DNA from: Tubulanus polymorphus
Taxonomy: Eukaryota; Animalia; Nemertea
Reading direction: 5' to 3'
Assembly (NCBI RefSeq): GCF_964204645.1
Contig: NC_134032.1
Span: forward strand, 12,140,275 to 12,204,274
DNA length: 64,000 bases
The notes under the pieces were generated by a model. The model was not told the DNA's origin, made no database searches, and worked only from the letters and a program-made list of their open reading frames with translations. This document shows positions 1,099 through 32,221 of the stretch, piece after piece. The position numbers and the translations under genes are program-made. The number at the start of each line of letters is the position of its first letter. Position 1 is the stretch's first letter.

Positions 1099-3444
1099 AT
1101 GAGACAGTTATATTTGTCGCCGTTTATTATTTGTGCGTTTTATTTTCGCTGGTTGACCGATATCGCCGCAGCTTTGAGTGTGACGAAAGTTTTTCAAAAT
1201 GGAGCTTCGCTGAGCATCGATTTGAAAAGTGAGTTTTTTGTCAATGACTGGGGTCCATTTCACTGCGCGACTTTTCCTCCATATCACATCGACATAACGC
1301 CGGATTCAATTGAAACACTCACCAAAAGTCGGAGGGTTATATCTTTTTTAGTTTAGTTTATTTCCGCAAGAAATTGTAACAAACTTCATATCTATAATGG
1401 ATGTTCCAATATATTCCATAGGCGTCGCCAGGATTTTTTTAGGGGGGAGGGGGTTCGAATATCGGCAACTTGGCGAATCTAGTAAGGCAGCGAAGTTGCC
1501 TTTGACGAGAACGGAAGGTCCGAAGTCCCCACGGGGGGTTTGGGGTCCAACACCAAGACAATTTTGAAAATTAGGAGCGATTTAAAGCGTTTTCCCGCCA
1601 CCTTGAGTTATTACCTTGTGGAAAAAACACGAGAACCACGAAGAGAAACAAATTACAACTACCATTGCATGTTTGTTTTATTAAATATGTATATCTTCAC
1701 AAATAGTATTAAGCTGTTTACAAAACTATGTAGTAAAAAATGAAGAAACCTAGCCGAAAAAGGGGGCTCGTTCGCACCCCCGAACCCCCCTGGCGACGCC
1801 TTTCCTCCCATTGCAGTATATGTTAACGGTCTGGTTGTGGTTAGTGTATTAGAATAGAAAATTACACCCGAAATATTTCAGTGTTTTAAAATCATTTCTT
1901 GTAGTTGTTGATCTTGTGTTTCCGTTTGTAGAAATTAATTCTGAAGTCGTAGTTTCGGAAAAAGGCGGATAATTTTTCTTGGTCCCATAACATTCGACTT
2001 ACACAATGTTTTCTGTAGCATAAATCGTCATAAAATAGCCTGATGATTATTTCTTGATTTCAAAAGCCCGGTCGATCATAACGACGGTCGATGATGTCAT
2101 AAGGGAATCATTCGTGGTGTTTCGTTCGATTTCATGAGTGACGTCATGGATCAATTCGACGGTCTGACTTATTCTTCGAAACTTGCATTTGAACAGGTTG
2201 GAATGTCATCGTTCATTATGGTGATATATCGGGACAAGCTGATGACTCTACCAGTTCTGTGAGCTGCCCGAATGGAACGGTGATGGTTAGCTGCAGGTGC
2301 GCGCCGAACAAGTGCGATGGAGCCATGTTCGCGAGCAACAACGCTTCGACTTGTACCGCCTACAGCGCTTTCATTCTGTTCGGCAAGCTAACTACACAGG
2401 TGCGTCACGCTTTCCAGACGATCTGTCAGCTGATCTGACGGATAACGCCCCCAACAGTCTGAATACCGGTTGACATGACGAACCCCAAACAGTCCGAATA
2501 CCAGCTGATCTGACGGGTTACCCCTAGAACAGTCCGAATGCCAGCTGATCTGACGGGTTACTCCTAGAACAGTCCGAATGCCAGCTGATCTGACGGGTTA
2601 CTCCTAGAACAGTCCGAATGCCAGCTGATCTGACGGGTTACTCCTAGAACAGTCCGAATGCCAGCTGATCTGACGGGTTACTCCTAGAACAGTCCGAATG
2701 CCAGCTGATTTGACGGGATACTCCCACCTGATTGGCCAAACTTTTAACTTTGCATAGACCCCCCTTTTTCCGATGGACCTTTACCAATCCCACTGTCTGA
2801 TAAAAGGGTTTATTATTTATTACAGGCGATTATTGAGTGTATAAATGAAAGTCCAGGACTAGAATTTTTGACGATGGGTGATGTCGGTGACTCGAACTCG
2901 AAAAACCCATCGATGCAGTGCCCGACGGGATGGACCGTGGTTTCTTGTTCAATAATGACTCCGTACGTAAACCAAATAATTTTGGTTTGAAGTTAATTAC
3001 TATTGGGTTATAATCGAAATGTCGAATCAATAAATTATAAGTTATTATTATTATTATGATTAGGAAATGTTTCGGACCTCATATTTCTCGTCTTGTTAGT
3101 TTGAGATTCTCTCTATATTGAAAGCAGATAACTTTATTGATATTAATAACTTTTGTCTTCCACATTTGATTTGTAATATCTTACACAATACGTGAAATGG
3201 TCACCGAACAAGCCTAAAGGGTGAGCTCTGGCGTCTGGTGAAAGGCTTCACGTGCACGTGGCTTTATTCAGTAAATTCAAAGGTACCACGTTTTTTTTTT
3301 ACTAGGCAGAGCAATAAGTACGAAAGCGCGTCTCTCGAACTGCAACCGGAAACTGACTATTGCCAGTCCTACAGTTGTGAAAAATGCAAACTGCAGGCTC
3401 GATGCACGAAACAAGTGGGTAGGTTTAAAATTGAAGTTGGTTGA
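1099..3444 (+). CDS. Cys-rich secreted protein, array copy A (two 6-Cys PCSK9-C/resistin-like modules)
   Basis: Exons 1099-1228 (MRQLYLSPFIICAFYFRWL..., hydrophobic leader), 2197-2399 (WNVIVHYG...SVSCPNGTVMVSCRCAPNKCDG...CTAY), 2826-2962 (AIIEC...CPTGWTVVSC), 3306-3418 (SASLELQ...CQSYSCEKCKLQARCTK). GT-AG introns have phases 1,0,2 and the frame is open. The end is either the donor after 3418 or the read-through stop at 3444. Confidence 0.85.
1420..1801. mobile_element. MITE-like element in copy A intron 1
   Basis: Terminal inverted repeats AGGCGTCGCCAGG...CCTGGCGACGCCT around a non-coding interior with G/C runs. Confidence 0.6.
2424..2725. repeat. Minisatellite, 40-bp unit, about 7 copies
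   Basis: cagctgatctgacgggttactcctagaacagtccgaatgc repeated in copy A intron 2. Confidence 0.9.
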
Positions 3445-4574
3445 ACGCATTTCAATAGCTACGTCAGTATACGTACGATCACTAATGGCTTCCGGTGCTA
3501 TGACTATGTGGTAAGTGGTGATAAAACGAATTTTTAGATTTCTATCGATGTTTTCAAGTGAATTAAAAACTCAAGATGAAGTTTTAAGTTTCGTCGAACC
3601 AATTGTGGTAGGTATAGCGAAGGTCGATATAGAGCGGGAGAAAATCGTCCTGCAGGTTTAGAGATCTGATACGAATTACATTCTAATCAAAAATGCCCAG
3701 CGCACACGGCAAGGAAAAAAAACGTTTTCGATGTGATCTGCTTTGCCACGTGCGTTGGTCATCCCATCGCGGCAGTCCACACTTCACATTTGTGTTCAGG
3801 ATGGAGATGTTTACGAGTTATTTTTTAATTCAAAATGAAGAACAGACATTGGAAATACTCAAATGATCGCCCAGACTTCACGAAACGAGGAAGAAGGGGC
3901 AGTATCGGGCTGCAGAATGTCTGGGAGGCGAAACTCTAGGCTGCATAATATTTGAGGGTGGGTCTAGGCATCAACGCAGAAAGAACACAACCACACGACA
4001 CTTCAACGTACTAATATCATTTCACCATCACACGAAAAAAAGAATATTAGTAGCCAATATTTATTTGTGGGATAGACGTCATACGAAAAATTCTAATCAA
4101 AGACAAACAGCAGACATTGGACATTTTCATCAGTAAACTTTCGAAAACCTTCAGAACTCCTTTCGAGACAATTATACCGAAAGTTCTTCACAAACTTCAT
4201 CCCCTTACAGCAGCTGTGGTGGGAGAGCAGGGAGTAGAGCAGTCACAGTGTGTTCATGGTGAACCCTCTGTGGAAGGGAGGGAGAGCAGCCAGTAGAACC
4301 ATGGACATATAAACTATAGTTTATACGTCCATGGTAGAACAGACTCAGTGTGTTCTTGGTGAGCCACCCATGGCTGTGGTGGGAGATGCAGTGTTCCAGT
4401 TGAAATTCAGTACTAAGCTTAGACTATGTCATAAGACTTGCAAAAAGGACAATGTAGAATAGCCACGCTGACGTGGAGAACTGACAATAAGTTTAAAACC
4501 CACTATATACAGAATTTAAGAGATTAGAAACGAATTATATTTGTCAAGAATTAAAATCTATGTATAGATAAGCT

Positions 4575-4980
4575 AATGGAACAGTCACGGTGTGTTCTTG
4601 GTGAACCCCTCACAGCTGAGGTGGAAGAGAAGTGAATAGAACAGTCACAGTGTGTTCTTGGTGAACCACCCAGAGCTGTGGTGGGAGAGCGGCGAATAGA
4701 ACAGCCACAGTGTGTTCTTGGTGAACCCCTCACAGCTGAGGTGGAAGAGAAGTGAATAGAACAGCCACAGTGTGTTCTTGGTGAACCCCTCACAGCTGAG
4801 GTGGAAGAGAAGTGAATAGAACAGTCACAGTGTGTTCTTGGTGAACCCCTCACAGCTGAGGTGGAAGAGAAGTGAATAGAACAGTCACAGTGTGTTCTTG
4901 GTGAACCACCCAGAGCTGTGGTGGGAGAGCGGCGAATAGAACAGCCACAGTGTGTTCTTGGTGAACCCCTCACAGCTGAA
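4575..4980. repeat. Minisatellite, 60-bp unit, about 7 copies (degenerate copies at 4200-4390)
   Basis: acagtcacagtgtgttcttggtgaacccctcacagctgaggtggaagagaagtgaataga, in two interspersed variants. Confidence 0.9.
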
Positions 4981-5240
4981 CTGACACAGTAGGTTTCATT
5001 TTTCAACCCGATGAAAATACCATTTGCTGCAAATAATCGAACAGTTTTCAAATGATGCAATCATATTATTCTAAAATGAATGCACTAACAATATATGTAT
5101 GTAAATTATTCAAACGTCAGGTCTGGAAACCGTCAGTTCGGAATATATTGCATTGAGCCGCTACTGCTGGTTCATTTACGCATCAGTAACTTTATCCCAC
5201 GTCATTGCGCCTCTTCCAGAATGTTTAGAGAAAAAAAAAT

Positions 5241-7063
5241 ATGAGACGGCTATGTTCGTCTGTATTTCTTATTTGCGCGTTTCATTTTCGCTGGTTGGTT
5301 TATTTCGCCTCAGCGTCGCGTGTGACGAACGTTTTTCGAAATGGAGCATCGCTTAGTGTCGATTTGACAGGTGAGGATTTTTTTTCTCATAAATACCGTT
5401 TCACGTAATAACGTATAGAACTCGGTGAAATGAAATAATGAAACTGTCGTAATGAAATGTGAAACGGGCCTCAGGGACCAGTTTAAGATCTTCGTCCCGT
5501 GTATCCACCCTCCTGCAATTTTTGGACATAAGTTGCAACTGGGCTCCGTGAAGCTGTTTCTGTGTGGCCCCGCGTCGCATGCATCGGGCTTAAGTTAAGT
5601 AAACAGGGGTTCCTGCGAGTTCCATAGAGTTGTGTCTCTAATCTAACGTTGAGAGGCTCAATCGAACATGAGCTAGTAATTACTGAGGATTCAAATTTTG
5701 ACAACCGAGGCTATCGTAGATCATAACAAAATCATTAGATTTGCAAGCGACAGACCAATCTCCAAGAAGGTTATTTTAGATTTAGATTTAGAATTAACGA
5801 TGATGTTAGTAGGGGAATACACGACAGGATCTACATAATATTTGATTACGTCATAGGGGAAAAATGGGGCAGCAACCATCGGGACGATCTATATTTGAAC
5901 TGATTGGGATTTTCAAATGTCTATTTGAACAGATTGGAATGTCAGTGTTCATTACGGTAATCACTCGCTCCCTGCAGACGACGCTCCGAGTTCTGTAAAC
6001 TGTCCAGATGGTACGGTGATGGTTAACTGCAGGTGCTTGAACAGGTGCGACGGCGCCAGGTTCACTTCGGCATGTACGGCCTATAACGGCCGAACCAATC
6101 CGCCGGGAACGACTCGGGTACGTCACGTAACACAAGCCGTCTATCCAAAATCCACGTTCACGCCGATATTAAAGGCAGTCTCATTATAGCCTGTCGACCT
6201 TGCGGGTAATCGAAGATTCGGTTAGCCGTGTGTGGACTGAAGTTTATACGTGTATCCACCCTCCTCCTGGTGGACTGTAACGAACCCCACCGTTTGTGTT
6301 CTTTTTTTCATTCAGGCAATCATTGAATGTATACCTAAAAGTCTGGAGCGAGACTTTTTAACTGTGGAAGCCACTGGAGAAGCAACGATAAATGAATTTT
6401 TGCAAGACCCGAAAGTTAGCTGTCAGCCTGGGTGGACCGTTGTCTCCTGTACACTTCACTCTCTGTAAGTGCCAGGGGCCGTATTCACGAAGTACCCGTA
6501 AGTTGCGTGTCACGTTGGATTTACGGGTGCTTCGTGAATACGGTCCCAATACAGCTCTCATTTCTGCCATTTGAATAAGAACTCTTAAAGTAAAACTCAC
6601 ATAATTAAAACAAACTCATTTGAACCGTATGATGTAACCCCGAGTAAACCCTGAATGATGCAACGGGTTCAATAAGTAAGCTTTATAAGTTCTTAGGTAT
6701 TAGTCTAAATGTGGTATATTGGCCGTTTAATAACAGTTTTAACTGTGATTTGCTTGCATCTTGACGGATGTGACGTCAAGTGCATAACACCTAGTGACTA
6801 GGGAACTAACAAGCCATCGTGGCAATAAATGTTGTAAGCTTTACATTTCTTTATTTGCTCTGATAGTCACTCTTCAAACATCAAATAATAATCGGATGAT
6901 ATCTTATAATCAATGATCACGTATTTCTAGATGGAGTGATATTTACCCAAGTGCGTCTCTTGAACCGCATCAGCAAACTCAAGGTTGCCAGTCCTACGAA
7001 TGTGGAAGATGCAAATTGCAAGCTCGGTGCGCGAAACCCTCGGGTAGGTTTAACGAAAGTTAG
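5241..7063 (+). CDS. Cys-rich secreted protein, array copy B
   Basis: Exons 5241-5370, 5933-6117, 6316-6464, 6931-7043 (donor GTAGGT; read-through stop 7061-7063). Same phases and 12 conserved Cys as the other copies. Confidence 0.85.
6475..6548. repeat. Near-perfect 27-bp inverted repeat (short MITE-like hairpin)
   Basis: ggggccgtattcacgaagtacccgtaa...ttacgggtgcttcgtgaatacggtccc, 25/27 complementary. Confidence 0.8.
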
Positions 7064-7789
7064 TAGGAGGTGTGACAAGAAGTAGTGAATATCTGTGCCT
7101 TTTTTATGCGGTAAGTATACCTCCCGATTTAACTAACCATTAAATTCGTGCATGCTAAAACTAAACGCGCATCATTTGCGGTAGGTAATCACCGATATCA
7201 ATGTTGGTTATAGCAGGCACCAATTTTGGCCTGCAAAGCCTAGATCTCGGGGCTATAGTCCAGTATAAGGCATTATAATTCGCGTGTTGAGTAACAGTGC
7301 GTTCTATGGCTAGTGTTAACAGCAAATGACCGTTGACAGTCGACACCTTGATTAAACGATGAGCTGACGTGTCGACCTGTCAACCTATCAACGATATCTG
7401 CCTTTAATTGCTATTCTTATTCATAATTTTCTTTGCTTCTCATAAATCCAGTATATAATCATTATTATACTCTTTATTTCACTATAAAAAAACTCTTACG
7501 CTACTAGATGTCTACTGTCAACCGTCCTTTACTGTCACCACCTAACTGGTTTGTAAAGTGTCTACTGTCGACATTCCTGTACAGTCATCACCAATCCGGG
7601 GTTCGTATGGTCCCTATCAACCGTCCTGTTGAGTCATCGCCCTGGTATGTAGGGTGTCGCTTGTCATCAGCTGTAGAATACGTTCTATCGAGAATCTATT
7701 TTCAACTTCCGAAAGGAATTCTACACATTGCGCTATAATGCCGCATATCACACTCGAGCCTAGATCTCTAACACAGGGTTTGGTTCACT

Positions 7790-8030
7790 CGACTTCAGAA
7801 TGTCTGAGGGATGCAGATACCGACTGTAGAATGCTGTCCTTAGAGGTGCAGGTCCACACTGTAGAATGTCTGAGGGTTGCAGAATTTCTAAGAGGTGCAG
7901 ATACCGACTGCAGAATGCTGTCCTTAGAGGTGCAGGTCCACACTGTAGAATGTCTGAGGGTTGCAGAATTTCTAAGAGGTGCAGATACCGATTGTAGAAT
8001 GCCTTAGAGGTGCAGGTCCAAACTGCTGTA
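7790..8030. repeat. Tandem repeat (~78-bp higher-order unit of a ~28-bp motif)
   Basis: actgtagaatg...gaggtgcaggtcca units, related to the 28.4-29.0 kb satellite. Confidence 0.8.
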
Positions 8031-8374
8031 GGCCTACTGACTCTTATTAGACACGGACCAATTTGGTACGGACATATTTGGCCCAGGCCAATTCATCTCC
8101 GCACGATCGCGGCTTACGTTAAGACTAAGGTATTATCCCGGTCCGTAATAATTTCACTTTTCGTACATACAATATGTTTTTCTGACAGCTAATGCGCGGA
8201 TGTATATAATCAATACCAATAGCATCGTTCTGACGCAAAGACTTTATCGAACATTCAGTTCTGTATAAAGGTTTGAATACTGCGCATTGGGTCGCAACAT
8301 AAAAACTCCTCCTGTTGTTTTTGCGCCAATCCGGAAAGTTTGGTAGTTTTGCTGAAGAATAATATGAGACGGTC

Positions 8375-10063
8375 ATGTCAGTGTTTTTAATTTACGCGTG
8401 TTATTTTCACTTGTTGGTTTATTTCGCTGCGGCGTCGCGTGATGTGGCGAACGTTTTTCGAAATGGAGCATTGCTTAGTGTCGATTTGACAGGTAAGGAT
8501 TCTTATCAAGAACTGTGAGGATTCACGACTCCCGATCTATAAATACAATACTGTTGTTGAAACGTTGACAAAAGTCGTTTTTATCTTGACAAGATAACCC
8601 TTGAAACAGACTCCTTGATTCTGTGAGTTTAATTCAACCAGTTCCACCGTGTTGTCGATTTGACTCTTTTGTGTGAAGAGCCCTGTGGAAATTAGGCAGT
8701 TCAAATCCACAGAGATTTTTTATTCTGGATGACCACTCAGCGAGTCCCATGATTTTTCACAATTCCTTCTCTCCGATAGGCCGACAAAGGTAAACGCAAT
8801 GGTTAAAAAGAAATTTAAGGGGGGTTTAACCATGACACTCGATCTTCTGGAAGGGTCTGTAAATAAAATCATCATATTTAGGGGAACCTTACCGTCAGGT
8901 CTACAGTTGAATGGGGTTCCCGAACTCTTAAATGAATCAATTATCGATGAAAACTATACCGATGCCTGAGAAGAAGAATGAATGTATTGTATATATTACA
9001 TTTGATGGGTACTGTGATAATATATGGATTCGGGAGTCTAAAAATCCAGTTTAGGTTCATTGAAAATTGACTAATTTTGACAACGCAAAAACCTATTGCT
9101 TGTCACGCCATCTGGTGGGATAGCTGGTGTTGCGGGTTGCCCGTTATCTATAAACGATTTGATGACTTAATTTGAAGAATAACGGAGCAGCAGTTCGGGA
9201 CGGTCAGAAATATTTCTCTTGAATGTCTATTCGAACAGGTTGGAATGTCAGTGTCTATTATGGTGATCGCTCGCCCCGAGGAGACGGCAAGTCCAGTTCA
9301 GTGAGCTGCCCGAATGGTACGGTGATGGTTAGCTGCAGGTGCTTGCACAGTTGCGACGGCACCAGGTTCGCGAATCGTTTTCAAACATGTGCCGCCAATA
9401 ATTATAGGGCGGCAACTACTCAGGTACGTCACTTGACACTAGCAGATTATCCGAAAGGCCGTTCACATAATTTTTCCGAGGGGGTACTCATGGGTTTCTT
9501 AAAGTCTTAATTTAAGTCTTAAATCTTAAACTTGCTTAAACTTAAAGTCTTAATCTTGCATGTAATCATAGTCTTAGAATTATCTGCATGGGTATAGTCT
9601 GATATTCAAACTTACATCCACCCTGTCTCCTGATGGATCGCGTGTAATGAACCCTATCATTTTGTGTTTCATTTCATTCAGGCAATTATTGGATGTGTAC
9701 CGGCAAGTCCGGAGCGAGACTTTATAACAGTGGAGGCCACAGGAGTTCCATTGAAATACGGCTATTTGAAAAACCCAAAAATTTGGTGTCAACCTGGATG
9801 GACCTTGGTTTCGTGTGCACTACATTCCCCGTAAGTGCCAGGGTACAGTTTCACTAGAGGAATTAACTCCTAATTCGATTGAAAATAAACTAAATTGATA
9901 TTGAGCCTTGAAATATAATTGATGATTACATATTTCTAGGTGGAGTCATGAGTACCCGAGTGCGTCGCTCGAACTTCAGCAGCAAATTCAAGGCTGTCAG
10001 ACCTACAATTGCGGGCGATGCAGACTGCAGGCTCGGTGCACAAAACTATCGGGTAGGTTGTAG
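8375..10063 (+). CDS. Cys-rich secreted protein, array copy C
   Basis: Exons 8375-8492, 9239-9423, 9682-9830, 9940-10052 (read-through stop 10061-10063). The ancestral ATG at 8364 is out of frame; an in-frame ATG at 8375 gives MSVFLIYACYFHLLVYFAAAS. Confidence 0.75.
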
Positions 10064-10394
10064 GTGAATTTTGCGGAGTAATATCGGCGAAATCAAGTAG
10101 TGAATTTCTGTGCCTTTTTCATGCTGTAAGTATACCTCAACATCTAACAAAGCTTTTATTGATGTTTCTAAAACTAAACCCCATATCATCATAGTGGTCA
10201 TCATCAAATTGCGGTAAGTAACACCCGGAAGGTGGGAGTTTGTGGGGAAGAGCTGTTAGTATCTATATGCGGGGTAACTATTGTGGTAAATGGAGGTACA
10301 ATTGTTGTAAACGGGAATGGACTATTGTAAAGGTTAGAGGACGAGGTAGCGTAAGTGTAGGAGATATCAGACTAGGCCCTTGCCAGATTTTAGG

Positions 10395-10775
10395 ACACAG
10401 GAGTTCCATTGAAATACGGCTATTTGAAAAACCCAAAAATTTGGTGTCAACCTGGATGGACCTTGGTTTCATGTACACTTAATTCCGCGTAAGTGCCAGG
10501 GTACAGTTTCACTAGTAACGCCTAATTCGATTGATACACTGAATTGACGAAGAAATTAGATCGATTTAGTAGACAATCTGGTAGATAATTAAACCTTTTG
10601 TGAAAATTTGGCCAAGGGCGGCTCAGTTAACATAGACACTCTATAGTGAAACAAGATAAAAAGTTAACTAGATAACTTGATCTCCTGTACACTACACTCT
10701 TGGTGAGTCGCAAGGCCATCATTCCGGCGGATTCGAACCTGATAACATTTCAAGAATGCCACGGTTCAAAATCCT
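10395..10775 (+). pseudogene. Orphan partial exon-3 duplicates of the array genes
   Basis: ~10395-10515 repeats the 3' half of copy C exon 3 with its donor and intron start. ~10681-10775 repeats the end of copy D exon 3 and the following intron (cf. 12812-12905). Confidence 0.7.
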
Positions 10776-11518: not shown

Positions 11519-13562
11519 ATGAGACAGTTATACTTGCCGGTGTTTTTGATTTGCGCGTGTTATTTTCACTGGTTGGTTTATTTCGCCGCCGCGTCGTGTT
11601 TGCGGAATGCTTTTCGAAAAGGAGCATCGCTAAGTGTCAATTTAACAGGTAAGGATTTTTATCATGAACTGCGTGTGACCAGTTACACAAGTTTCGTATA
11701 ATTACATAAGTACTCAATGAAACTGTAATGAAACGTTAAGCCGTTCTGTTAAGCAGGCCCCAGTGACCACTTGCACAGTAAAATGGCTTACTTTTTAAGC
11801 TCGGTTTTATAGCCAAATAAAGCCGATTGATAGATGGACCACACTTAAGACTGAAGACTGAAGGCTGAGTTAAGCTATGGAACTCAGGAATTCAGTTCTA
11901 TAGAGTTTTCAGTTAAAGCTGACTTGATAGAGGCATAATTGAAAATGAACCTGAGCCAAAAAGAAATCGAATTTAACTTTTATGCAACAAAAGGGTTCTG
12001 TAATTTTGAGAATATCGTACCCCTGTAGACCGAAAATTTAATGTAGACCATCGTGAATTATAGAATAGTCCCTAGTTACTTGGATGATGTCATAGGGAGA
12101 TCTAAAAGCGACAGTCCGATGTCTAGGTAGGGTCTTTTGGATGCCATAGGGGAATTTTTCAATCGTGAAAGTTCATCTTTTCCGGGTTCTGTAGATAAAA
12201 TCGTTAAACGTCGAGTTTATGACATCAAGTTTGTAAAAAGGTTTAAAAAGGATTCGGGACGGTCTGAAATCTATTTCTATTCAAGGTTGGAATGTCAGTG
12301 TTTATTACGGTAATCACTCGCTCCCAGATGACGACGCTCCCAGTTCTGTAAGCTGCCCGTATGGTACGGTGATGGTAAGCTGCAGGTGCTCGAACAGGTG
12401 CGACGGTGCCTTGTTTAAACGTCGTTTCCCGACATGTACCGTCAACAACGCGCGGAACTCGGGAACTACACGGGTACGTCACGTGACACCGTAGCAGACG
12501 AAACAAAAACTTCGTTTACGTCGATATTTCGAGGGTTGAACCAAAGTCCAGTGATTAACTTTTTGAAACGGGGGGGGGGGGGTTTACAGCGTGAATTCAG
12601 CTTACTCGACCCAGTTGCATAATTCTGAGGTACAATTTGACTCAAAGCCCTGATGGCCCGAACTCCACTTCTGTTCTTTTCATTCAGGCAATTATTGGAT
12701 GCATAACTAAAAGCCCGGAACGAGAATTTCTAACGGTTGCGGCCACAGGAAATGTGTCGGGGTACTATATGGAGGACCCAGAAGTCCGGTGTCAACCAGG
12801 ATGGACCTTGGTCTCCTGTACACTTCACTCTTGGTGAGTCGCAAAGCCATCATTCCGGCGGATTCGAACCTGATAACATTTCAAGAATGCCACGGTTCAA
12901 AATCTTTCAGCCTGATTTCACAGCTTGAGGCGCAGCTTATCGATGATGTCATTAACAGCCAATCATAAATCCCATTTTAGTTTAGCAAGGGCTTTTCCAT
13001 GTTATCCTTCTTTGCGACAGCGCCACAAGGCTGTGATCGTCGCCGCTGTATGTTTTTGTGCGGCAAACCTGCGCATGTACGGTACCTGCGTACTCGGACT
13101 AGTGTGGCAGGGTTTCGTGCTGTGGCTGCAAGTTGAGCGATGCCATCAGGATCGAATACCTACTGAGGGAGGATGGTCAAGGGAAGCTGCAATTCAAGAA
13201 TAAACTCTCCAATATAATTTGCAAAATAACACACTAGTTATCTACAAAATATTGAAATCAAGTACTAACTTTACTAACTTTTGCCTAAAAATTGGACTGC
13301 AGGGAAAATTGCAACTAACCTAACGATAAACATGGCTTTATATCCAGATTAAAAAGAAGCCATTTAACCTGGGAAATAAAAGATTTTGCAGGTAAAAATC
13401 TATAACGAATGCTCGCGTGTGTTTAGGTGGAGTAGTGGATATACGTCGTCTCTTGAGCTGCGGCAGCGAACTCAAGGCTGCAAGTCCTACAATTGCGGAA
13501 GATGCAGACTGCAGGCTCGATGCACAAAACTATCGGGTAGGTTGAAAGTAGTGTTCATTTAA
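11519..13562 (+). CDS. Cys-rich secreted protein, array copy D
   Basis: Exons 11519-11648, 12286-12473, 12688-12833, 13427-13536 (read-through stop 13560-13562). Frame open. Confidence 0.85.
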
Positions 13563-15589: not shown

Positions 15590-15957
15590 TACAACGATAA
15601 CTGATATCCTACTGCACACTAGCGCCACCTGGTAGATCCCCAGATGCCACGAGTGGAATCCTCTATTGTCGCAGTAGTTGATATCCTTCTGCTCACTAGC
15701 ACACCTGGCGGATCCTCACTTCCCATAAACGGAATCCTCTATTGCTGAGTAGTTGATATCCTACTGCAGACTAGCGCACCTGGTGGATCCTCACTTGTCA
15801 CAAGTGGAGTCCTCTATTGTCGCAGTAGTTGATGTCCTACTGCTCACTATCACACCTGGCGGATCCTCACTTGCCATAAATTGAATCCTCTATTGCTACA
15901 GTAGTTGATGTCCTACTGCTCACTAGCACACCTGGTGGATCACTCACTTGCCACAAG
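15590..15957. repeat. Minisatellite, ~59-bp unit, about 6 copies
   Basis: gatatcctactgctcactagcacacctggcggatcctcacttgcca...ggaatcctctattg repeated. Confidence 0.85.
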
Positions 15958-16357
15958 TTATAATTTATACTGATTGTCGAACGCCCTCTCATCACAATTA
16001 TAATGAGAGAGCAGCGAGTAGACCTATAATCAGTTCACTCCCCTCACGGTTCTAATTGCCGAGACCGTAGGGTTTTCTTTTGTTATTATATATTGACGAA
16101 ATGGTTTGCGAGCTACTTTTGAGTACTTCCGTATTGAAATAAGAAATCTAATTGTTTTAATGACGATCCAATTAAGCTGGTTAATGATGTTCTTGACACG
16201 ATAAATCATTAACACCAGTAGCACCGGCCTGGCTTATGAACCGCCAGTTTTGTAGAGTTGGAATTAGTGTTCGGAATAACTGCATAACAGCTCCGTATAG
16301 ATTAGTCAAGTTGTTGTGGCACCCGTCCGGAAAGTTTGGTCGTTTTTGGTGAAAAAT

Positions 16358-20452: not shown

Positions 20453-22334
20453 ATGAGACGGTTATCTTCGCCGGTATTCATTTTTTGCGTGTTTTATTTT
20501 CGTTGGTTGGTTTATTTCGCAGCGGCGTCGCGTGTGACGAGAGTTTTTCGAAATGGAGCATCGCTTAGTGCCAATTTGACAGGTGAGGATATTCTTATCA
20601 AGAACTGTAAAGATTCATGAGTCCAGATCTATAAAGTATGGTGGCTGATAAGGGCCATCACGTAAAATTCCTGGTATGCAATGAAGACGCCAGAACGTCA
20701 AAACGAAACAAAAACGTCGAACTTCCTTTAAAAAGTCATTCTTGGTCCGCCAAAACAAAGAATGTCCATTTAGGCACCCCTGCCAAAACAAACTTAGTAA
20801 TTTTTTAGAGAAAATTCGACGTTTCGAAATTTTTCGTGGTTTTTGCGGGGTCACCAAAATATCATTCTCCTCCCCGAGCCAAAACCTTAGACTTATATAC
20901 TAATTTTGTACATTCCTCACATTCTTAAGCCATGCCCTCACTCTCTTCTAACCTATACAACTATTCTCACGATGTTTTGGTTGTGGCGCCAAGATGAAAG
21001 TTTTTTGCTATCGGACTTTTTAGAGGAAATTCAGCATTTTTTTCGTTTTGGCGTTCTGGCTTGAATCAGCCACTTCCATGAATGCAATACCGCTGTTGGA
21101 ACGTGAATGAATTGTTAAGTCGTTTAATAAAACCTTAGAGTGATTATCTCGACAAGATGATAACACAAAGGAGAAACGGGAAAATGGATCCTGTGAGTTT
21201 TATTCAACCAGTTCCAGTGTTGTCAACTTGACTATCGCGTGAAGAACCCTGTGTAAATTAGGTATTTCAAATCCACATTCTTACATTCTAACTCTGGATG
21301 ACCGAAATTGACCGGTGATTTTTTGAAGATCACTTTCCCCCTGTAGGCCGAGCATGCATGATGAAAAGAATAATTAAAGGGGGCTTTAAATGTAACCGCC
21401 CGATCTTCGGGAAGGGCCAATAGATAAAATGATTATATCGATATCATCGGGAAATCCATATTCTTCTCCGCCAGGTCTAAAGTTCAATTATCTCAGTGAT
21501 CCGATGACGTCAGTAGGAGTAAAATGGAGCAGCAATCTTCGGGACGGTCTGAAATATTTTTCTTGAATGTCTTATTTGAACAGGTTGGAATGTCAGTGTC
21601 TATTATGGTGATCGCTCGCGCCGAGGAGACAGCGAGATCAGTTCTGTAAGTTGCCCGAATGGTACGGCGATGGTTAGCTGCAGGTGCTCGAACTGGTGCG
21701 ACGGCACCAGGTTCGCGGATCGTTTACAAAAATGTACCGCCAGTAATTATCGGTCGGGAACTAATCAGGTACGAAATGTGACACTAGACTTTCACATCTA
21801 GGAGCTATTCAGTGGTTTCTAATAAGTCTGAATTTAGCTTGACGATCTCGTACGTAAATATAGTCTTAGGATTAACTGTATTCGTATAGTCTGATATTCA
21901 AACTTAGATCATCCAAGATGGATCGCATCGCGTGTAACGAACCTTATCACGCCGTGTTTTATTTTATCCAGGCAATTATTCGATGTATACCGACAAGACC
22001 GGAGCGAGACTTTATAACAGGAGTTCCAGAAGGAAGCGGTTTTCTGAAAAACCCAAAAGTCTGGTGTCAAACTGGATGGACCTTGGTTTCGTGTACACTA
22101 TTTTCCCCGTAAGTGCCAGGGTACAGTTTCACTAGAAGTACTAACTCGATTAAAGATAAACTAAATTGATATTGAGCATTGAAATATAATTGATGATTAC
22201 ATATTTCTAGGTGGAGTCATGAGTACCCGCGTGCATCGCTCGAACTTCAGCCGCAAACTCAAGGCTGTCAGACCTACAATTGCTGGCGATGCAAACTGCA
22301 GGCTCGGTGCACAAAGCTATCGGGTAGGTTGTAG
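20453..22334 (+). CDS. Cys-rich secreted protein, array copy F (closest to copy C)
   Basis: Exons 20453-20582, 21584-21768, 21972-22108, 22211-22323 (read-through stop 22332-22334). Confidence 0.85.
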
Positions 22335-23332
22335 GTGAATTTTGCGGAGTAATATCGGCGAAATCAAGTAGTGAATTTCTGTGCCTTGTTCATGCTGTAA
22401 GTATACCTCAACATCTAACAAAGCTTTTATTGATGTTTCTAAAACTAAACCCCATAAGTGGTCATCATCAAATTGCGGTAAGAAACACCCGGAAGGTGGG
22501 AGTTTGTGGGGAAGAGCTGTTAGTATCGATATGCGGGGTAACTATTGTGGTAAATGGGGTTACAATTGTTGTAAACGGGAATGGACTATTGTAAAGGTTA
22601 GAGGACGAGGTAGCGTAAGTGTAGGAGATATCGGACAAGGCCCGCGCCAGATTTTAGGCACTGATCAAATAACTGTGTGAATGCTGACTTACTGCATGTG
22701 ACTCACTTCACTTTGTTTAAGCATTGTTTAGTATCGAGTGAGTGGTTTACGTGTGAACGCGCTCTCTAATTAGAAACGGGCCAAATCTAACTTTTGTCTG
22801 AACCTGACCAGTTAGATCCGGCCCAAGTCTCGGTGTGATCGCGGCTATTTAATCTGGAATGAAGAAACAAATAGACTACAAATACCTGACATTAGATTTT
22901 ATATCAGTACATAAGGGATAATCCACACGATACATGATATATTTATAATCTAAAACGAAGTACTTACATTGGAAATCGTCCAGACTTCTCGAAACGAGGA
23001 AAGGGCCTGCGACAGGTTTGATACATATTAAGAGAGTCACAAAACATTTGAGACTGCGTTGAAAACAAAAAAGAAAAATAACTTCGTTCTTCGTTCTTCC
23101 TCACCTCATGGTGACCATCGATGATGAAATCTCAGAAAATGTTGGCATTGATTTCTTTGCGAGTCAACCCTGATACAATTATGACTTTTAGCAATTCTTC
23201 GATTCATTAACTGTAATACGGCTTTGAAGTCGATGTTATCTGATCGTTCTAAAAGGGTATATATTCCCAAACCTAACTGAACAATGTCTAAAAACGCCCA
23301 GCATTCTTCGAAAAACCGACTCCAGTGAAAGT

Positions 23333-25682
23333 ATGAGGCACTTATATTCGCTGGTGTTTTTTATTGGTGCTTTTTATCTTTTAGACCGGTTGAATGATAT
23401 CACCGCGCCATTGAGTTTGGAGCGAGTATTTGAGAACGGAGCATCGGTAACTACTAATTTAACGGGTAAGTTTTGAAGCATATTTGAATAGTTAGATCAC
23501 GCATTCTGTTAAACGTTCAGATCGGGTCGAACTCGCAACTGCGACTCGGCCCAGGTTTCATATGCGCTAAACCACGAGTCAAAAATTAATCTACACAATT
23601 CGCAACCGCTTTCACAGGTGTGGGTTAAAACTGACTCAAAAATTTAACAGGATTTAATTGAATCCTAATGTAACTACGAGCTGATTCATACTGAGAACTG
23701 GGGAAATTGAGCGAATACTAATGGGTTTTGTACCTCGCTATTTATAGCGATACAAAATCACTATGTCGCCCTTCTAGCACCTTCTTCACACAGGGAAATT
23801 CAAAATTTTCATATTTACCGGCATTCATTTACCGTGTGTATAAAAAGGTTGTAACTACGCCACAAGACGATACACTAATATCTATGAAAAAAAACTGGAT
23901 TTATAAGATACCCAAGGGTTCAAACGAACTAACGCCGGACCTGATTTCGCCCAGTCCTGAAGTGTGGCTGTCTCCACAGAGATTTACGTAGCTCTACGAT
24001 CCTTGTGTAACCGATCTGTGGTAACATCAGCCACTAAGGTTCTTGGTGAAGACCTGGTGCGATTATACCCTTTTCTACCAATCTACTAAGTATGAATTTT
24101 ATATTTTACCCCGCTCAAGAATTAATTATGAAGCCAGATAGGCATATTCCCTATTTCTAAAGGGTGGAGTGGCAGAAGTTGAATACGAACTAGTGTCCAG
24201 GCCAAGTACCCCTTATTGAGGAGACGATGTGTCTTTGTCCGTACATTATTTGAGGCTTGAACCTATAAACCCCCTGAACCTCATTGTTATGATATGTCTT
24301 TAAAACAGGCTGGAACATCACTGCATATCAAAGTGAAAACTCAACAAGGACGGGTGCATCTAGCAGTTTTGTGAGCTGCCCGAATGATACGGTGATGGTA
24401 AGCTGCAGGTGCTCGAACAGGTGCAACGGTGTCAGATTCTGGAGCTCCAATATCTCGGCATGCGTGACCCCTTACGCCTGGATGTCACCGCGAACTTTTC
24501 GGGTACGTCATGTGACGCTAGCAGACGATCGGGCTTAACAACGGTTATGCCACCAGATGGCGTGACTAACTGTAGGTTTTCAATTTCAATGAACCGTGAC
24601 TCCTGGATCGACACCTCCAAGAACATTGGAAAACACGGAAACTGGAGAAAGAAACATGTTTTCGAGTGTTTCCCTGTGTCGTGTGCCTTCATGAGAAACG
24701 AGAAACGTGGTTTCGGGAAACAATGTTTCCAAGATCAAGCATGTTTGATTCCGTGTTTCCGTGTTTCCCTGTGTCACGCACACGGCACATTGAAACGGAT
24801 GGACATTTTCGTTTAACTATCGTTTCCGTGATGCCAAACGCGATGCGTCTGTTCCCGCGTGTGATCTGGGAAATGTTGTCGCTTCTATTAAACGTACGTG
24901 ATTTCCAGTGTCACGTGCGTTGAGCTTTTGGCTCTTGTTTCCATCATTAGAATCTAAAATTCAGCTGTAAGCATCTCATTTTGATAATGCCGAGATTACT
25001 TTTTAGATATCTAGTTATAAATACATGTTGTAAATATTCCATTTTTTTACGAAAAATTTCGCTTTTCAAAATGTTTTCAGTATATTTTTCTCTATGTGAC
25101 AGACAATCATCGAGTGTGCACAGATAACGCCGGGGCGAGAATTTTTGACGGTTTCACCAGCCGATTATCAGAGAGACCCATCAGTCCAGTGCCCATCTGA
25201 ATGGACCGTGGTTTCATGTACACTATTCTATTATTCACGGTAAGCCCTTCTGAGCCTCCATTACAATATAAATTCATAATCTATGTTCTGTACACCAGGA
25301 TAAAGTTCCACAATCGTGAGTTAGAGTTAACTCTGAACTCAGGATCCAGTTCCGCAGTTGTGAGTTAAGAGTTTAACTCTTGAGTTGAAAAATCAGTTCA
25401 TTCTCAATGTCAAGAGTCAAATCTAATTCAGAATTGTGGAACTTGATCCAGTCTCGAACCGGACCGAGTTTCACCAACTCTCAGATTTATTCATCGGTTC
25501 AATTTTGTGAAACAGAATGGTTCATAATGTATAAAGAGGTATCTTGAACATCATGAAATATTTTTAGGTTGCACAGTCACTACGGAAATGCTACGTTGAA
25601 TATTTTTACTCGTACCTGTACTTCCTCCAGTTGTGGATGGTGCAAAATACAAGCTCGTTGCGTCAAAATATCAGGTAAGTAA
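23333..25682 (+). CDS. Cys-rich secreted protein, array copy G (divergent G/H subgroup)
   Basis: Exons 23333-23465, 24309-24502, 25103-25239, 25568-25674 (donor G|GTAAGT; read-through gives GK-stop at 25680-25682). All Cys retained. Confidence 0.8.
25300..25452. mobile_element. Dispersed palindromic MITE family (CCAGTTCCACAGT...GAGTTAACTC...GGAACTGG)
   Basis: Related copies at ~25915-26020, 31800-32010, 56400-56510, 58780-58890 and 62865-62950. Confidence 0.6.
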
Positions 25683-27047
25683 CAATATCATATATTTCAC
25701 AGATTCTACCATCTAGACCTGATACTTTCTTGATAGAATAAAAACATACCCCGAAACTAACGAAGCTCGCTTTAGTATCCGTGGGGGGTCGAGGCTGGAA
25801 AAAGTTCAGATTTTCTAGATTTTTCCCTCTAGCCTTGGAAAGATAGATCCCGATCTTTAACTCGAAGCACTCTTCACCGGCAAATAGTAAACCTAATGCT
25901 GGTTGATAACTAGGGGCCAGTTCCACAGTCGTGGGTAAGTGTTAACTCAGAGTTAAAATCAGTTCATTCCCGATGAGTTAACACTGAGTCAAATCTTAAT
26001 TCGCGACTCTGGAACTGGGTCTAGGTGTTTACATTTTGAACCTCGTAATAACGAACCTAGAACAAACCTAGAATTTCGTTCGATTTAGATAATTTCATAA
26101 TTTCATACTGGATATAACGAATTCGGTTATAACGGATATTTTCTGGTCCCCTGAAGTTTGTTGTAGCGAGATTCCGCTGAGGTAAGTTAGAAAATCCCCC
26201 AAGAAGCGAATTGCACTAAACGGGATTCAACGTGGTAAGTCTATTAGCTACTTTAAAAGTTTCGAATTTCTGGCAACATGACGCGACTGGTTGCTAGACC
26301 AATCGAATTTGCGGCCACGGACCTACCGATGGTGAGGATGAATTCGATGTTGGGTTCGAATATTATGTTACTTTTCTTCTTCATTTTTTTCGAAAATTTG
26401 TAAAAACTTTCTTTTTTAAGAGTCGGGGAGGATTGGCGTGACCAGTGAAATATCAAGAAAACAGATTTTTCTGAAAACTCCTGAAGACTTTAAAAGATAA
26501 TAAAATTTGTGTCTACAAAAACGTTTCCGATACATCTAATGATCATTATTACAAGTTAATTTTAGATATTCATTTTTTTCTTTGGATGACAGAGAAACGT
26601 TTACATTTTACGTTTAGATAATCGCGTTGTTTATCTCGATTTTTAAACTGACGTAAACTGAAAGTTTCAATCTGCGGCCTTGACCCTGCATCCCTTACAA
26701 CATTCGTAGAACAACGACGTACTTGATCAGCAATTCAATTTACAAGTCCGTCAACGTAACTATATTCCCAACTATAATGCCGTAACCGAGTTTGACTTTG
26801 CTTGTAGAGAATCCTTTCTCAATACTAGTCAACTTAGTGGATCTCAAACGAATTTATTTCCCTGATTCTTAGAGAAATATCTAAACAGTCCAGATGCTAC
26901 CGAGTTCCTTGATTTTCAGGTCGGTGAAATGTTTACAGCCTTTACTGCAGTCCCAACGCCACAGTGTTTCCTGATTCGCGACGCTACCGAGTGAAGCCGA
27001 GTTTAACTGCATATCGAACAATTCAGAGGAATTTTAGATGAACTTAC

Positions 27048-27268
27048 CCAGCAGCTGAAAGCTTCTTAAAATCTTCAATTTACGACAACTGCAAGACAGA
27101 AAGAATGGCATGAAGACAAATGTATGAGACCAAATGACAGTTACAAAACTTCCTAACACAGGATCTATTTGAACTATTTCAGCTTTTATCGAAGGATTTA
27201 GATTTTCAGTTTTCGGTTGGTCTTGTTTTGTATTGTTCTCGGTGGCTGAATGGACTTCTTTATTATTC
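27048..27268 (-). pseudogene. Duplicated, degenerate NUP42 exons 4-5
   Basis: [29 protein letters not shown] and gaagctttcagctgctgg|gtaagt match NUP42 exons 34849-34941 and 34691-34731. The exon-4 acceptor is lost and the exon-5 copy has an in-frame stop. Confidence 0.8.
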
Positions 27269-27507
27269 ATAGAAATAAAACACTTTTAAAAATTTCCACA
27301 TTCCAATGGTTCATGCGCTGCTAAAACGAGATAGAGTTTGGTCTAAGATATTTGTTCATTATCAATACTTTCTAACTCTTAGTTAAATCCTGTCATCTTC
27401 TTAAGATAGTAACACCAGAGTTGCACAAAACGGTTTTGTGTTTATAAACGGGACTCGAGAAACTTTAACAGTTCTTGATTTAAATTCTCGCCTTTCAAAA
27501 TCCCCAC

Positions 27508-28398
27508 CTGTCAAATCCACACAAGCGATGCTCCATTTCGAAAAAAAAATATTCGTCATACGCAACACCGCGGCGAAATAAACCAACCTGTGAAAATAAA
27601 ACGCGCAAACATAACCGTCTCATATTCATTCTTTCTACCAAAACCAGGAACTTTCCGGACGGGTGCAACAGCAACAGGAGTTTTTGCGTCGCGACAAAAT
27701 GCAATATTCAAACATTTTACTGAACTGACATTCGATAATTTAAAACAGCGTTACTGGTATTGATTATATCACATCCGCCCATTAGCTGTCGGAAAACACT
27801 TACATTTTGTTGTATTGCAGAAATGAAAATTATCACCGTGATTTTAACATCTAAACACCCGCGAACGAATAGCTTTTAAATACCGGTGCATTTGAAAGTC
27901 ATTACGTAAGCCGCGATCTGGCGGAGACGATTTGGCCTGGGCTAAATTGGCCCGTGCCTAAGTGCCGAAATTGCCCAAATATAGGGCCTACTGCATTCAA
28001 CATTCAGCATTCATCACAGTCCGGTCCTCGTTGAGTATTGTCAAGTGAACCAACCCGGTGTTGGAGATCTAGGCTACGCCAACATGGGTACCGACCATAC
28101 CCAAAATTAGTTCCTACTTACCGCAAATGATGGTGACCACTTGCGCGTATTTTTAGAGTATGTCATCCATAAATGCTTGAGGGTATACTTACCGTGTAAA
28201 GAAAAATCACAGAAATTCACCGCTAGATTTCACCGATAATTACTACGCAAAATTCACCGACTTCAATTAAACCAACGGCCACTTGTTTCATGTATCGAGT
28301 TTCGTGTATCGCATTTTACATTTTACACAACTTTAGGACCGGCAATCGACAGTTTCCGGTCGCAGTTCGAGAGACACGCACTTCTGTGATTGCTCAAC
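27508..28398 (-). pseudogene. Inverted pseudogenic array fragment (degenerate exon 4, spacer, frameshifted exon 1)
   Basis: The reverse complement of ~28278-28398 resembles exon 4 (tctctcgaactgcgaccggaaact...) with disruptions. 27508-27623 is exon 1 with an internal deletion/frameshift. The spacer matches the region upstream of copy C exon 1. Confidence 0.75.
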
Positions 28399-28419
28399 CT
28401 TGAAATACGTAGATGGCAC

Positions 28420-29020
28420 TTAGTCTGAGAGGTGCAGGTCCAAACTGTTGAATATCTGACAGGTGCAGGTCAAGACTGTAGAATATCTGAGAGATGCATG
28501 TCAAGACTGTAGAATATCTGAGAGGAGCAGGTCTGAGAGGTGCAGGTCCAAACTGTAGAATATCTGAGAGGTGCAGGTCCAGACTGTAGAATATCTGAGA
28601 GATGCAGGTCCAGACTGTAGAATATCTGAGAGATGCAGGTCCAGACTGTAGAATATCTGAGAGATGCAGGTCCAAACTGTAGAATATCTGAGAGATGCAG
28701 GTCAAGACTGTAGAATATCTGAGAGATGCAGGTCAAGACTGTAGAATATCTGAGAGATGCAGTCAAGACTGTAGAATATCTGAGAGATGCAGGTCAAGGC
28801 TATAGAATATCTGAGAGATGCAGGTCAAGGCTATAGAATATCTGAGAGATGCAGGTCCAGACTGTAGAATATCTGAGAGGAGCAGGTCTGAGAGGTGCAG
28901 GTCCAGACTGTAGAATATCTGAGAGATGCAGGTCCAGACTGTAGAATATCTGAGAGATGCAGGTCCAAACTGATAAATGTCTGACAGGCGCAGGTCCATA
29001 ATGTTGAATGTCTGAGGGGT
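28420..29020. repeat. Minisatellite, 28-bp unit, about 20 copies
   Basis: agactgtagaatatctgagagatgcaggtc repeated. It produces the spurious repetitive ORFs at 28394-29080. Confidence 0.92.
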
Positions 29021-29933
29021 ACTAGACCAGGCTACAGCAGGATTTAGGGTAGAAGATACACATTTGATACCGGGCAGCACTTCGACTTACTTATAAAATT
29101 TTGGCAACACCGAAAAATATAAGTTGCCAATACCAGTTTGGTTTCGGACTGTTACCGGGTATTTCGTAACCATGGTTGCATTCCGCCCTGAAACATGAAA
29201 AACTGAACACGATTGGCTTAGTTTTCCAGACACACTTCATTACGCTTATAAAGCGGATGTTTTTGTCGACGAAAACTCGATAGTTGTCGAAAGTAATTCA
29301 CGTTGTCGTCGAATATTAGTTCAGCAGTGATCGTGTTCCATTATAGATGTACGATATTTGTTCGTGCTGCGTAAGAGCTGTTTCTATCTTATGATCTTTT
29401 TTGGTCATAACGGGGTCAATTTTGGAAGTAGCTTCGTGCGTGAAATAGGTCTTAAACTGATTGAAAAGGTGGTGTATCATAGCAAGCAGGATCTAATCAG
29501 TTTTGCGCTGTTTATATGGATTGCAAAATAGTGTAACGAGTGAGCACGGAATCCGGTGAAATGGATGAAAAGTGTCAACTTTTATCATCAGATTTATTTC
29601 GCTTCGAAAATGTTCGACATAACTGAGATGAACTGATTATTCGTTGAGGGAGGAAGGTTTTGAAGTTTTCCTTAAGAAAAAAACAACTTTGTTCTTCGTC
29701 CCTCTTGGTTCATCATCATTGGGGAATTGTTGCCACTTCTTTGCAAGTCGTCTATCTGGATTCAATATTGTCTTTTTGGCGATCCTTCAATGGACAGTGG
29801 CTTTGAATTCGACATGCCATTCCGTAGCAGGGCCCGACTTTCTGATCAGTTTAAAACCTATTTCGAGTATAAACTCCCAAAACTGACCGGGCTAATGTCC
29901 ATGTAACATCCAACAGTTAATAGACTCGAAAGT

Positions 29934-32221
29934 ATGAGGCAGTTCTATTCGCTGGCGTTTTTTATTGGAGCGTTTTATTTTCACTGGTTGAATGATATCA
30001 CTGCGGCATTGAGTTTGGAGCGAGCATTTGAGAACGGAGCATCGGTGACAGCTGATTTAACGGGTAAGTTTTTGAAGCATATTTGATCACGCGTTCAGAC
30101 ACCTTCAGTCGAACTCGCAACTGCGACTCGGTCCAGGTCTCAAGGTGGTGCTGAGTATGAAAAAAAAATCTAAATCGCCATAGAATATGTTTTCGGTAAA
30201 ACACGAATATTAACACAATTTCAAATCTAAACCACGAGTCGAAAATTAGTTTACGCAACTCGCGCTAAAATCTAAAATCGACTCGAGAGTCTAACAACAA
30301 TTCTATCAAAATGAATTAACTACGAGCTTATTCAAACTGTGAACGGAGGAAAACTGGACGAATACCTGTAAGTATTGTAGCTCAGATTCGTTATTGACAG
30401 CGATACAAAAAAGAACACCGATGAATAAAACTAGATATTCGCCCCCTAATTCTTACACCGCGAAATCTAACATTTCTATAGACCGGTTTTCATACTGTGT
30501 ATAAAGAAAAAAGTTGTAACTACGCCACAAGACGATACACGAATATCTACAGTAAAAACAAAAACTGGATTAGAAAATGCCCGGTGCGATTATACCCTTT
30601 TCTACCAATTATTACTAAATATGAATTTGATATTTCATCCTGGGCTCAAGAGTTATCTATCAAACCAGGCACCTATTTGCAATTGCTAAAATAGGTGGAG
30701 TGTGGCAGAAGTTCAATACGAACTCCAGTGTACTCAGAAGCTACCAGGCCAAGTCTACCCAATCGCAGAGATGATGGATCTTTGTTCATGCAGCAGCGTC
30801 GGAATCAGGATTTCAGGGAGGCGTGCACAAATTAGGAAGGGGGTCGGGGTCCTCCCCCAGAAAATTACTTAGAAACAAAACCAATAACAAAATAGCAAGG
30901 ACGTTAGGAGGGGGCACCCCCCCCTGGATCCGCCGCTGTGCAGTATGAGCCCATAACCCCCCCCCCCCCACCTCATTCGTATTGTCTTTCAAACAGCAGG
31001 CTGGAACATCACTGTTTATCAAGGTGAACCCTCAAGGACGCGTCGGCGCAGTCTAGTTAGCTGTCCGACTGATATGGTGATGGTTAGCTGCAGGTGCTCG
31101 AACAGGTGCGACGGTGCGAGATTCGCGCGCTCCAATATCACATGCGAGGCCTTTGTGCGGCCACCAGAAATTATTCGGGTACGTCATGTGACACCAGCAG
31201 ACGATTAACGCTTATTTTTATCACCAGATAGCCGTTAATAGACTAACAGCAGTTTTCAATGATTATTCTAATGAACCATTATTCCCTGTATCAAGTTTCG
31301 TCTATCAAACAATCACCTCTAAAATGATATGAGTGTATTTTCGTCACATGGTTTCGGGTAACAATTTTTCCAAGATCAAATGTTTTACTTTGAGTGTCTG
31401 CCTGTGCCAACGCACAAGGAAACAGGTATACGAGAAACAGCTTTTGGATTTCGTGTTTCTATGTTTCCGTTGTGCCAAACGCAAACGATGCGTCTACACC
31501 CGCAAACATGTTTTATTAGGGAAACATTGCTTGCAGACACGATGTTTCTGATTTCTCGTGAACATACGCGATACCGAGAAACGTCGAAGGTATTTTCACG
31601 TATTATATTCTTTGTTACAGGCAGTTGTCGAATGTACACCAATAGTCCCGCAGCGAAGATTTCTAACAGTGACGCAACCGGGCAGTTTTCTAAAAAACCC
31701 ATCAGTCGAGTGCCCGTCTGGATTGACTGTTGTTTCGTGTACACTTTTTTCTCCGTAAGCCCCTCTCGGCACAATATCAATAATCTATGTCCTTGTACAC
31801 CAGGTTCACCAGTTGTGAGTTAGAATTAACACTGAACTCAGGATCCAGTGCCACAGTTGTGAGTTAGAGCTTGGAGTAATCATTTGACAAATGATTACTC
31901 CATTAAGGGTAGAGTTAACTCTGAACTCATGACCCAGAGTTTTACTCTGAGTTGAAATCAATTCATTTTCAATGTTTTGACTCAACAGTCAAATGCCATT
32001 CAGAACTGTTGGAAAACTGTCAGATTTCTCTATCAATTCGAATTTCGTGAAACAGGGTGGTTTATAACGTAGAGTTATCTTGAACATGATCTTCTTGAAA
32101 TGTTTTTAGGTTGATTCGTTCACAGAAAAATGCTATTTTAAACATTTCTACTCGGAACTGTACTTCCTCCTGTGTAAAATGCGCTATACAAGCTCGGTGC
32201 GTCAAACTACGGGGTAAGTAA
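29934..32221 (+). CDS. Cys-rich secreted protein, array copy H (divergent G/H subgroup)
   Basis: Exons 29934-30063, 31000-31178 (NAGNAG acceptor), 31621-31754, 32110-32213 (donor G|GTAAGT; read-through gives GK-stop at 32219-32221). Confidence 0.8.

Follow-up and report, generated by a model that had tools for sequence, protein, structure and literature searches.

Here we describe a tandem array of eight related units, A to H, in the genome of the ribbon worm Tubulanus polymorphus (Nemertea), and consider the splice donor that stands at the end of every unit. The array lies in a window of 64,000 nucleotides (contig NC_134032.1, positions 12,140,275 to 12,204,274 of the forward strand); coordinates given here are those of the window, and contig labels C1 to C11 refer to the T. 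polymorphus assembly. Exon mapping gives each unit four exons, which encode a leader and two modules of the PCSK9-C-terminal/resistin-like type. In all eight units the exon lengths modulo 3 are 1, 2, 2, and 2, the intron phases are 1-0-2, there are no internal stops, and 12 cysteines are present. Exons 2 to 4 add up to a multiple of 3, with a phase-1 intron at each end—the symmetric class 1-1 cassette proposed in a preliminary description of this stretch, and confirmed by the exon lengths.

All units are on the forward strand. Unit A spans 1099-3418 (exons 1099-1228, 2197-2399, 2826-2962, and 3306-3418, with a phase-1 donor after 3418), unit B spans 5241-7043 (exons 5241-5370, 5933-6117, 6316-6464, and 6931-7043), and unit C spans 8364-10052 (exon 1 to 8492, then 9239-9423, 9682-9830, and 9940-10052). 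The first ATG of unit C (8364) is out of frame; an in-frame ATG at 8375 preserves the hydrophobic leader. Next come unit D at 11519-13536 (exons 11519-11648, 12286-12473, 12688-12833, and 13427-13536) and unit E at 16358-18413 (exons 16358-16487, 17436-17620, 17819-17967, and 18304-18413), in which the donor splits a Ser codon. Unit F covers 20453-22323 (exons 20453-20582, 21584-21768, 21972-22108, and 22211-22323), unit G 23333-25674 (exons 23333-23465, 24309-24502, 25103-25239, and 25568-25674), and unit H 29934-32213 (exons 29934-30063, 31000-31178, 31621-31754, and 32110-32213).

Every unit retains its own open leader, with a ratio of nonsynonymous to synonymous divergence (dN/dS) of 0.64 in the leaders against 0.48 in exons 2 to 4; among copies the mean dS is 0.8 and dN is 0.38. 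In several units 150-190 nucleotides upstream of the ATG are conserved alongside the unit's own leader exon. The exon-1 ends of B to F read pyrimidine-CAG and then GT (1229-1230, 5371, 8493, 11649, 16488, 20583), and they have modest acceptor scores too; this is the ordinary donor consensus, yet it could be available for recursive leader skipping.

The array carries marks of its own duplication. In the C-D spacer, partial forward-strand duplicates of the exon-3 ends of C and D, including their donors, form a mosaic at 10393-10773 (89% identical to the C end and 97% to the D end), which we read as a trace of unequal crossing-over. A fragment of the exons of an FG-nucleoporin gene was copied together with G (26947-27278; compare 34588-34952), and thus G and H come from one segmental duplication. 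An exon-4/spacer/exon-1 junction has been duplicated in inverted orientation on the reverse strand at 27497-28392; this copy is broken, resembles the end of A and the start of B most closely, and is not a gene with deleted exons. Minisatellites occupy introns and spacers at 2424-2724 (period 40 nucleotides), 4566-4979 (60), 7791-8025 (about 84), 15602-15959 (about 76), and 28423-29037 (31).

Exon 4 ends in GTAGGT after 3418, 7043, 10052, 13536, 18413, and 22323, and in GTAAGT after 25674 and 32213, as the preliminary description had listed. Exon lengths bear out its claim that all eight donors share one codon phase, which is phase 1; its placement of the donor directly after the last Cys has to be corrected to four codons and one base past that residue. 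The donor is indeed kept despite codon change—E reads S-R where other copies read G-R, G-K, G-T, or S-K—and the read-through tails beyond it are unconserved, at 2-31 amino acids. Ranked against every GT site in the window, the exon-4 donors score at about the 95th percentile or higher. The donor is intact in all 12 intact copies, namely A to H and four solitary copies (L002, L003, L004, and L005), and in 12 of 12 the split codon has T in third position, where Gly would allow any base. For 11 copies, whose tree has a synonymous length of 3.63, the probability that two donor sites would persist under neutrality is about 7e-4, a rough value taken from Nei-Gojobori distances. Where it can be read in broken copies the donor has decayed (2 of 2: the inverted duplicate at 27497-28392 and a fragment on C4). 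Taken together, these comparisons of sequence show that the exon-4 donor is under selection. Two broken dispersed copies, L021 and L022, lie on contigs C4 and C7 and contain a frameshift and stops.

The solitary copies bear directly on what the donor is kept for. Over the 10 kb downstream of each of the four no further unit is present, and each is followed at 1.4-2.5 kb by an unrelated gene. In the tree, L002 nests with C and F, and L003 and L005 fall inside the A-H clade. The preliminary description had proposed that exon 4 of any unit could splice to exon 2 of any downstream unit; since four solitary copies keep the donor, such splicing is not the reason for its retention, while the frame compatibility that the proposal assumed does hold (56 of 56 joins). 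All 56 exon-4-to-downstream-exon-2 and leader-to-downstream-exon-2 joins are stop-free, and this because of the exon phases alone. Extracellular modules are as a rule symmetric, of class 1-1 (PMC8001218); phase compatibility is therefore no evidence of cassette design.

Paralogs elsewhere in the genome suggest where the donor came from. A six-unit paralog array on contig C11 has a phase-1 donor 2-8 codons past the last Cys, and each of its six units has its own following exon encoding a PAN domain, as does one lone copy. The T. polymorphus RefSeq model LOC141913364 splices the unit to its private PAN exon, and the Saccoglossus protein XP_006818615.2 shares the phase-0 and phase-2 introns within the unit and the phase-1 intron to the PAN exon. 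Another RefSeq member of the family, XP_074640007.1, ends in a short private spliced exon. Other paralogs (C1, C5, C6, C10, and C11) mostly stop no more than 10 residues past the last Cys, mostly with AATAAA nearby. Donor-bearing types fall on separate branches of a tree whose deep branches are poorly resolved, and continuation past exon 4 is probably the old state. No PAN exon was found in the spacers or near the A-H array, on a genome-wide PAN list that is a lower bound. We conclude, from gene structure, that the exon-4 donor is ancestral and marks the 3' boundary of an ancient class 1-1 shuffling module, and that the PAN exon to which it leads in kin, as a private exon, is absent from the A-H clade. 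Among the three readings offered in the preliminary description—cassette splicing, an amidation signal, and a relic of a multidomain ancestor—a multidomain ancestor is best supported, as an account of origin: the same donor joins the PAN exon in kin and in Saccoglossus. As a side observation, paralogs on C1 and C6 (L007 and L009) appear to start with a non-coding exon, and on C6 there are two donors 20 nucleotides apart.

The modules belong to an old extracellular fold. Family searches of the window units were run exon by exon; single exons gave weak Resistin and PCSK9_C3 Pfam matches of 13.6-22.2 bits against cut-offs of 25-26.7, and the gathering score was not reached. A profile of exon 2 matched 77 proteins in a representative library, and two-module relatives among these matches come from Lingula, Lineus, Watersipora, Ciona, and Saccoglossus. 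For a model of the Lingula two-module homolog (predicted local distance difference test score of 86.7), the 29 best Foldseek matches are PCSK9 chains, with template modelling (TM) scores up to 0.65 and a best E of 8.6e-6. With this homolog as proxy, the modules of A to H are modelled as a Cys-bridged beta fold of the PCSK9 C-terminal type. The module occurs in several architectures: with PAN and EGF (P0005), with FN2 (P0049), and as 2-8 tandem units (P0009 with two, P0027 with eight). One ENA contig encodes a natural concatemer, an intronless protein of 1251 amino acids with eight fused two-module units (L031, 1001-4756). No paper on the two-module family was found in the literature. Given its fold, its partners (PAN and FN2), and how fast it diverges (dN of 0.38), the product is, at a guess, a secreted binding protein active in the skin, in mucus, or in innate defence.

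The 3' flanks contain further donors. A conserved block of about 110 nucleotides with two extra donors follows exon 4 in A to F and in L002, which thus retains all three donors as a solitary copy. On the forward strand the blocks lie at 3490-3625 after A (extra donors near 3511 and 3608), 7079-7200 after B (7111 and 7181), 10092-10233 after C (10126 and 10214), 13589-13722 after D (13617 and 13704), 18568-18682 after E (18593 and 18663), and 22363-22496 after F (22397 and 22478). In the extra donors 9 of 10 columns are invariant, against 15% of the remaining block columns. Several identities for the block were considered: it is no dispersed repeat, being present only after exon 4 of the A-H clade; z-scores of -1.85 to +1.44 and the lack of an Rfam match in 12900-36000 speak against a structured RNA; and a 5' untranslated region (UTR) exon of the next unit is unlikely, as the block lies downstream of solitary L002 and is absent upstream of A. 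A mini-exon of 16-22 nucleotides that encodes a short hydrophobic tail is unproven; its frame is consistent in A, C to F, and L002, and its acceptor scores are poor.

G and H have a different flank. In the G-type 3' block (26180-26510, forward strand), a pair of extra donors precedes a pyrimidine tract and an AG that is a candidate private acceptor (26421), and AATAAA comes 77 nucleotides after it. Two solitary copies carry a homologous block, as does H (about 32630-32950), and the flanks of G, L003, and L005 are homologs of the interval that follows H. As a candidate acceptor, the G/H-type copies have in common a pyrimidine-AG site that lies 300-900 nucleotides downstream and ranks at the 93-99.7th percentile. 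In G, H, and L005, though not in L003, a transposon-like end lies directly against the first of the extra donors (26050-26180, 32490-32630); it matches dispersed sites in the genome. Past the extra donors, H (32705-32745) and L005 (3330-3370, reverse strand) have what we take to be an ETS-like and a CRE (cyclic AMP response element)-like motif, which may mark a putative downstream promoter; a further donor-like site follows this stretch in G and L005.

Polyadenylation signals are unevenly placed. G has AATAAA at 25737, 54 nucleotides past the read-through stop, and L002 also has AATAAA at the stop. Of the 12 copies, 10 have no AATAAA within 150 nucleotides of the stop, compared with 2 of the 16 terminal-type paralogs. 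In genuine PAN terminal exons, too, AATAAA is not close (85-1596 nucleotides away), which weakens a near-stop AATAAA as a marker of terminal exons.

We favor the reading that A to H are independent genes from tandem duplication, each with a short private 3' end, and give it a probability of roughly 0.55. Each unit would have its own promoter and signal-peptide exon and encode a secreted product of about 190 amino acids with two modules. The donor after exon 4 would, to judge from its selection, still be recognized by the spliceosome, and the unit's own spacer would most likely hold the short private exon, terminal or 3'-UTR, to which the donor leads; this exon possibly alternates with read-through to the local stop or with use of the two extra donors, and any splicing into the next unit would yield minor read-through chimeras. 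This reading is supported by the donor in solitary copies, the private PAN exon in kin, the units' own leaders, and the conserved upstream sequence, together with the short private exon of XP_074640007.1, the pyrimidine-AG site of G and H, and the finding, with a small acceptor model, that other AG sites outrank the next unit's exon-2 acceptor in every spacer. Several results weigh against it. An acceptor is plausible for the G/H-type copies only: for A to F no good private acceptor was found, the AG in the conserved block scoring poorly and missing in B. Sense-strand AATAAA occurs once in spacers A to F, against 9 antisense and 9-12 expected (P of about 1e-3 versus local composition, in a post hoc test on related sequences); on its sense strand the spacer of F lacks ATTAAA as well as AATAAA, whereas each of the four solitary copies has AATAAA in its own flank. 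Spacers A to D do contain ATTAAA, and units E and F have no canonical signal that could serve. No database protein was found for any copy of the A-H clade, a blank that is no evidence of absence.

A mix-and-match cassette system is possible, though not the most likely reading. Within the array, transcription of A to F would run past exon 4, and exon 4 would splice to a downstream exon 2, giving concatemers or chimeras of 2n modules from several promoters that end at G with its own AATAAA; we regard this as unlikely. In its favor, every join keeps the frame, AATAAA is depleted in the spacers of A to F, the extra donors are nearly invariant, and hard-wired concatemers exist (P0027, P0009). The usual junction of read-through chimeras runs from the last-but-one exon to the second exon (PMC6862657), which makes the proposed junction a typical one, and extra U1 sites with missing poly(A) signals resemble the continued elongation of U1 telescripting (PMC10404622). 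Against these points stand the three donors kept in solitary L002 and the exon-4 donor in three more solitary copies, the constrained leader of each unit, and the stronger AG sites between each donor and the next exon 2; the AATAAA count is subject to the limit given above, ATTAAA remains in four spacers, and PAN terminal exons do without a near AATAAA. No fused protein of the A-H clade was found in databases at 110-350 or 349-1110 amino acids, nor among cluster representatives. A historical version of the same idea—that after PAN loss A to F gave up their poly(A) signals, kept three U1 sites each, and had transcripts from several promoters that splice exon 4 to the next exon 2—strikes us as rather improbable.

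Instead, retention of the donors may reflect U1 binding: they would modulate RNA stability or the formation of 3' ends and would seldom be spliced, and the proteins would end in the 2-31-residue tails. U1 suppresses cleavage and polyadenylation without splicing (PMC10404622), and A to F have three donors in a row without a matching acceptor; G and L002 have AATAAA right at the stop reached by read-through, and in most terminal-type paralogs the protein ends no more than ten residues past the last Cys. We nevertheless consider this account doubtful, as the exon-4 donor occupies the phase and place of the donor used in kin, and 10 of the 12 copies lack AATAAA within 150 nucleotides of the stop. 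The suggestion that the motif is kept for C-terminal amidation, signalled by G-R or G-K ahead of a stop, is very improbable. G and H do end G-K-stop and L004 ends G-K-R-stop, but G|GT A(A/G)G at phase 1 must read G-K or G-R, so the residue pair is simply the donor consensus read as codons, and the suggestion is rejected on that ground; E (S-R), L005 (S-K), and L002 (G-T) break the pair yet have an intact donor, the split codon always has T as its last base, and most tails extend beyond the pair. A functionless relic, kept only through recent duplication, would explain why no partner exon is visible in the spacers, but it is extremely improbable: the copies have a mean dS of 0.8, and we reject a dead relic because the donor is kept across codon changes, is unlikely to have been retained neutrally, and has decayed in broken copies.

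Comparison with known systems sharpens these choices. Protocadherin and UGT1 clusters splice single variable first exons to common constant exons (PMC1885805). Like these clusters and GCNT2, the array consists of tandem paralogous units, each with a signal-peptide exon and a putative promoter and ending in a donor of common phase; it differs in having four exons per unit, no constant exons, and lone copies, and so fails the defining test of the protocadherin/UGT1A logic invoked in the preliminary description. That description had also noted that no exon 5 is shared among the spacers, and our search of the spacers likewise found no shared coding exon. A convergent FG-nucleoporin gene (33457-35351, reverse strand) closes the array about 1.2 kb after H, which leaves no room for a constant region, and no shared constant exons were found downstream: the 1.2 kb interval contains neither PAN nor a shared coding exon. 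As in cis-splicing of adjacent genes (cis-SAGe) and transcription-induced chimeras, the proposed splicing would join an upstream donor to a downstream second exon, and the units are, as cis-SAGe requires, same-strand neighbors with compatible donors and second-exon acceptors; if it were what an eight-unit array mainly produced, with the frame preserved, it would exceed the sporadic two-gene cases. The PCSK9 C-terminal Cys/His-rich domain (PCSK9_C1, PCSK9_C3) and resistin (PF06954) share the same beta module; A to H have two modules rather than three (PCSK9) or one (resistin), stand alone without a subtilase, and fall below Pfam cut-offs. The two-module genes with PAN (the LOC141913364 array and XP_006818615.2) have the same unit, phases 1-0-2-1, and the donor after the last Cys, but a private PAN exon where the A-H clade has two extra donors instead. 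Class 1-1 shuffling modules, like these, are extracellular, mainly-beta domains with phase-1 introns at both ends and varied architectures; the two-module unit differs in lacking a Pfam family of its own and, here, in keeping its 3' intron without the ancestral partner.

Beyond the array, the FG-nucleoporin gene is, by its motif, presumably NUPL2-like. It is followed by a short-chain dehydrogenase (DCXR-like; 36086-38960), a long interspersed nuclear element (LINE) reverse transcriptase fragment (41831-43849), a gene that we take to be GTSF1-like (44228-47524), a GT11 fucosyltransferase (49463-50587), a TPR protein (52626-55166), Tfb4/GTF2H3 (55934-57422), and a presumably peflin-like gene (59060-60710).

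The locus is best read as exon shuffling caught part-way, in which one ancient extracellular module has the same introns in a nemertean and a hemichordate. One genome holds the module with its PAN partner, without partner or donor, and with a donor whose partner is gone—and the array contributes to the definition of an invertebrate family, as yet without a name, that is akin to resistin and the PCSK9 tail. If splicing into the next unit does take place, it would yield secreted chains of variable length and composition, a splicing equivalent of the multi-unit proteins that are encoded outright elsewhere; were it the predominant path, it would be a means of diversifying secreted proteins that, in contrast to protocadherins or UGT1A, needs no constant exons.

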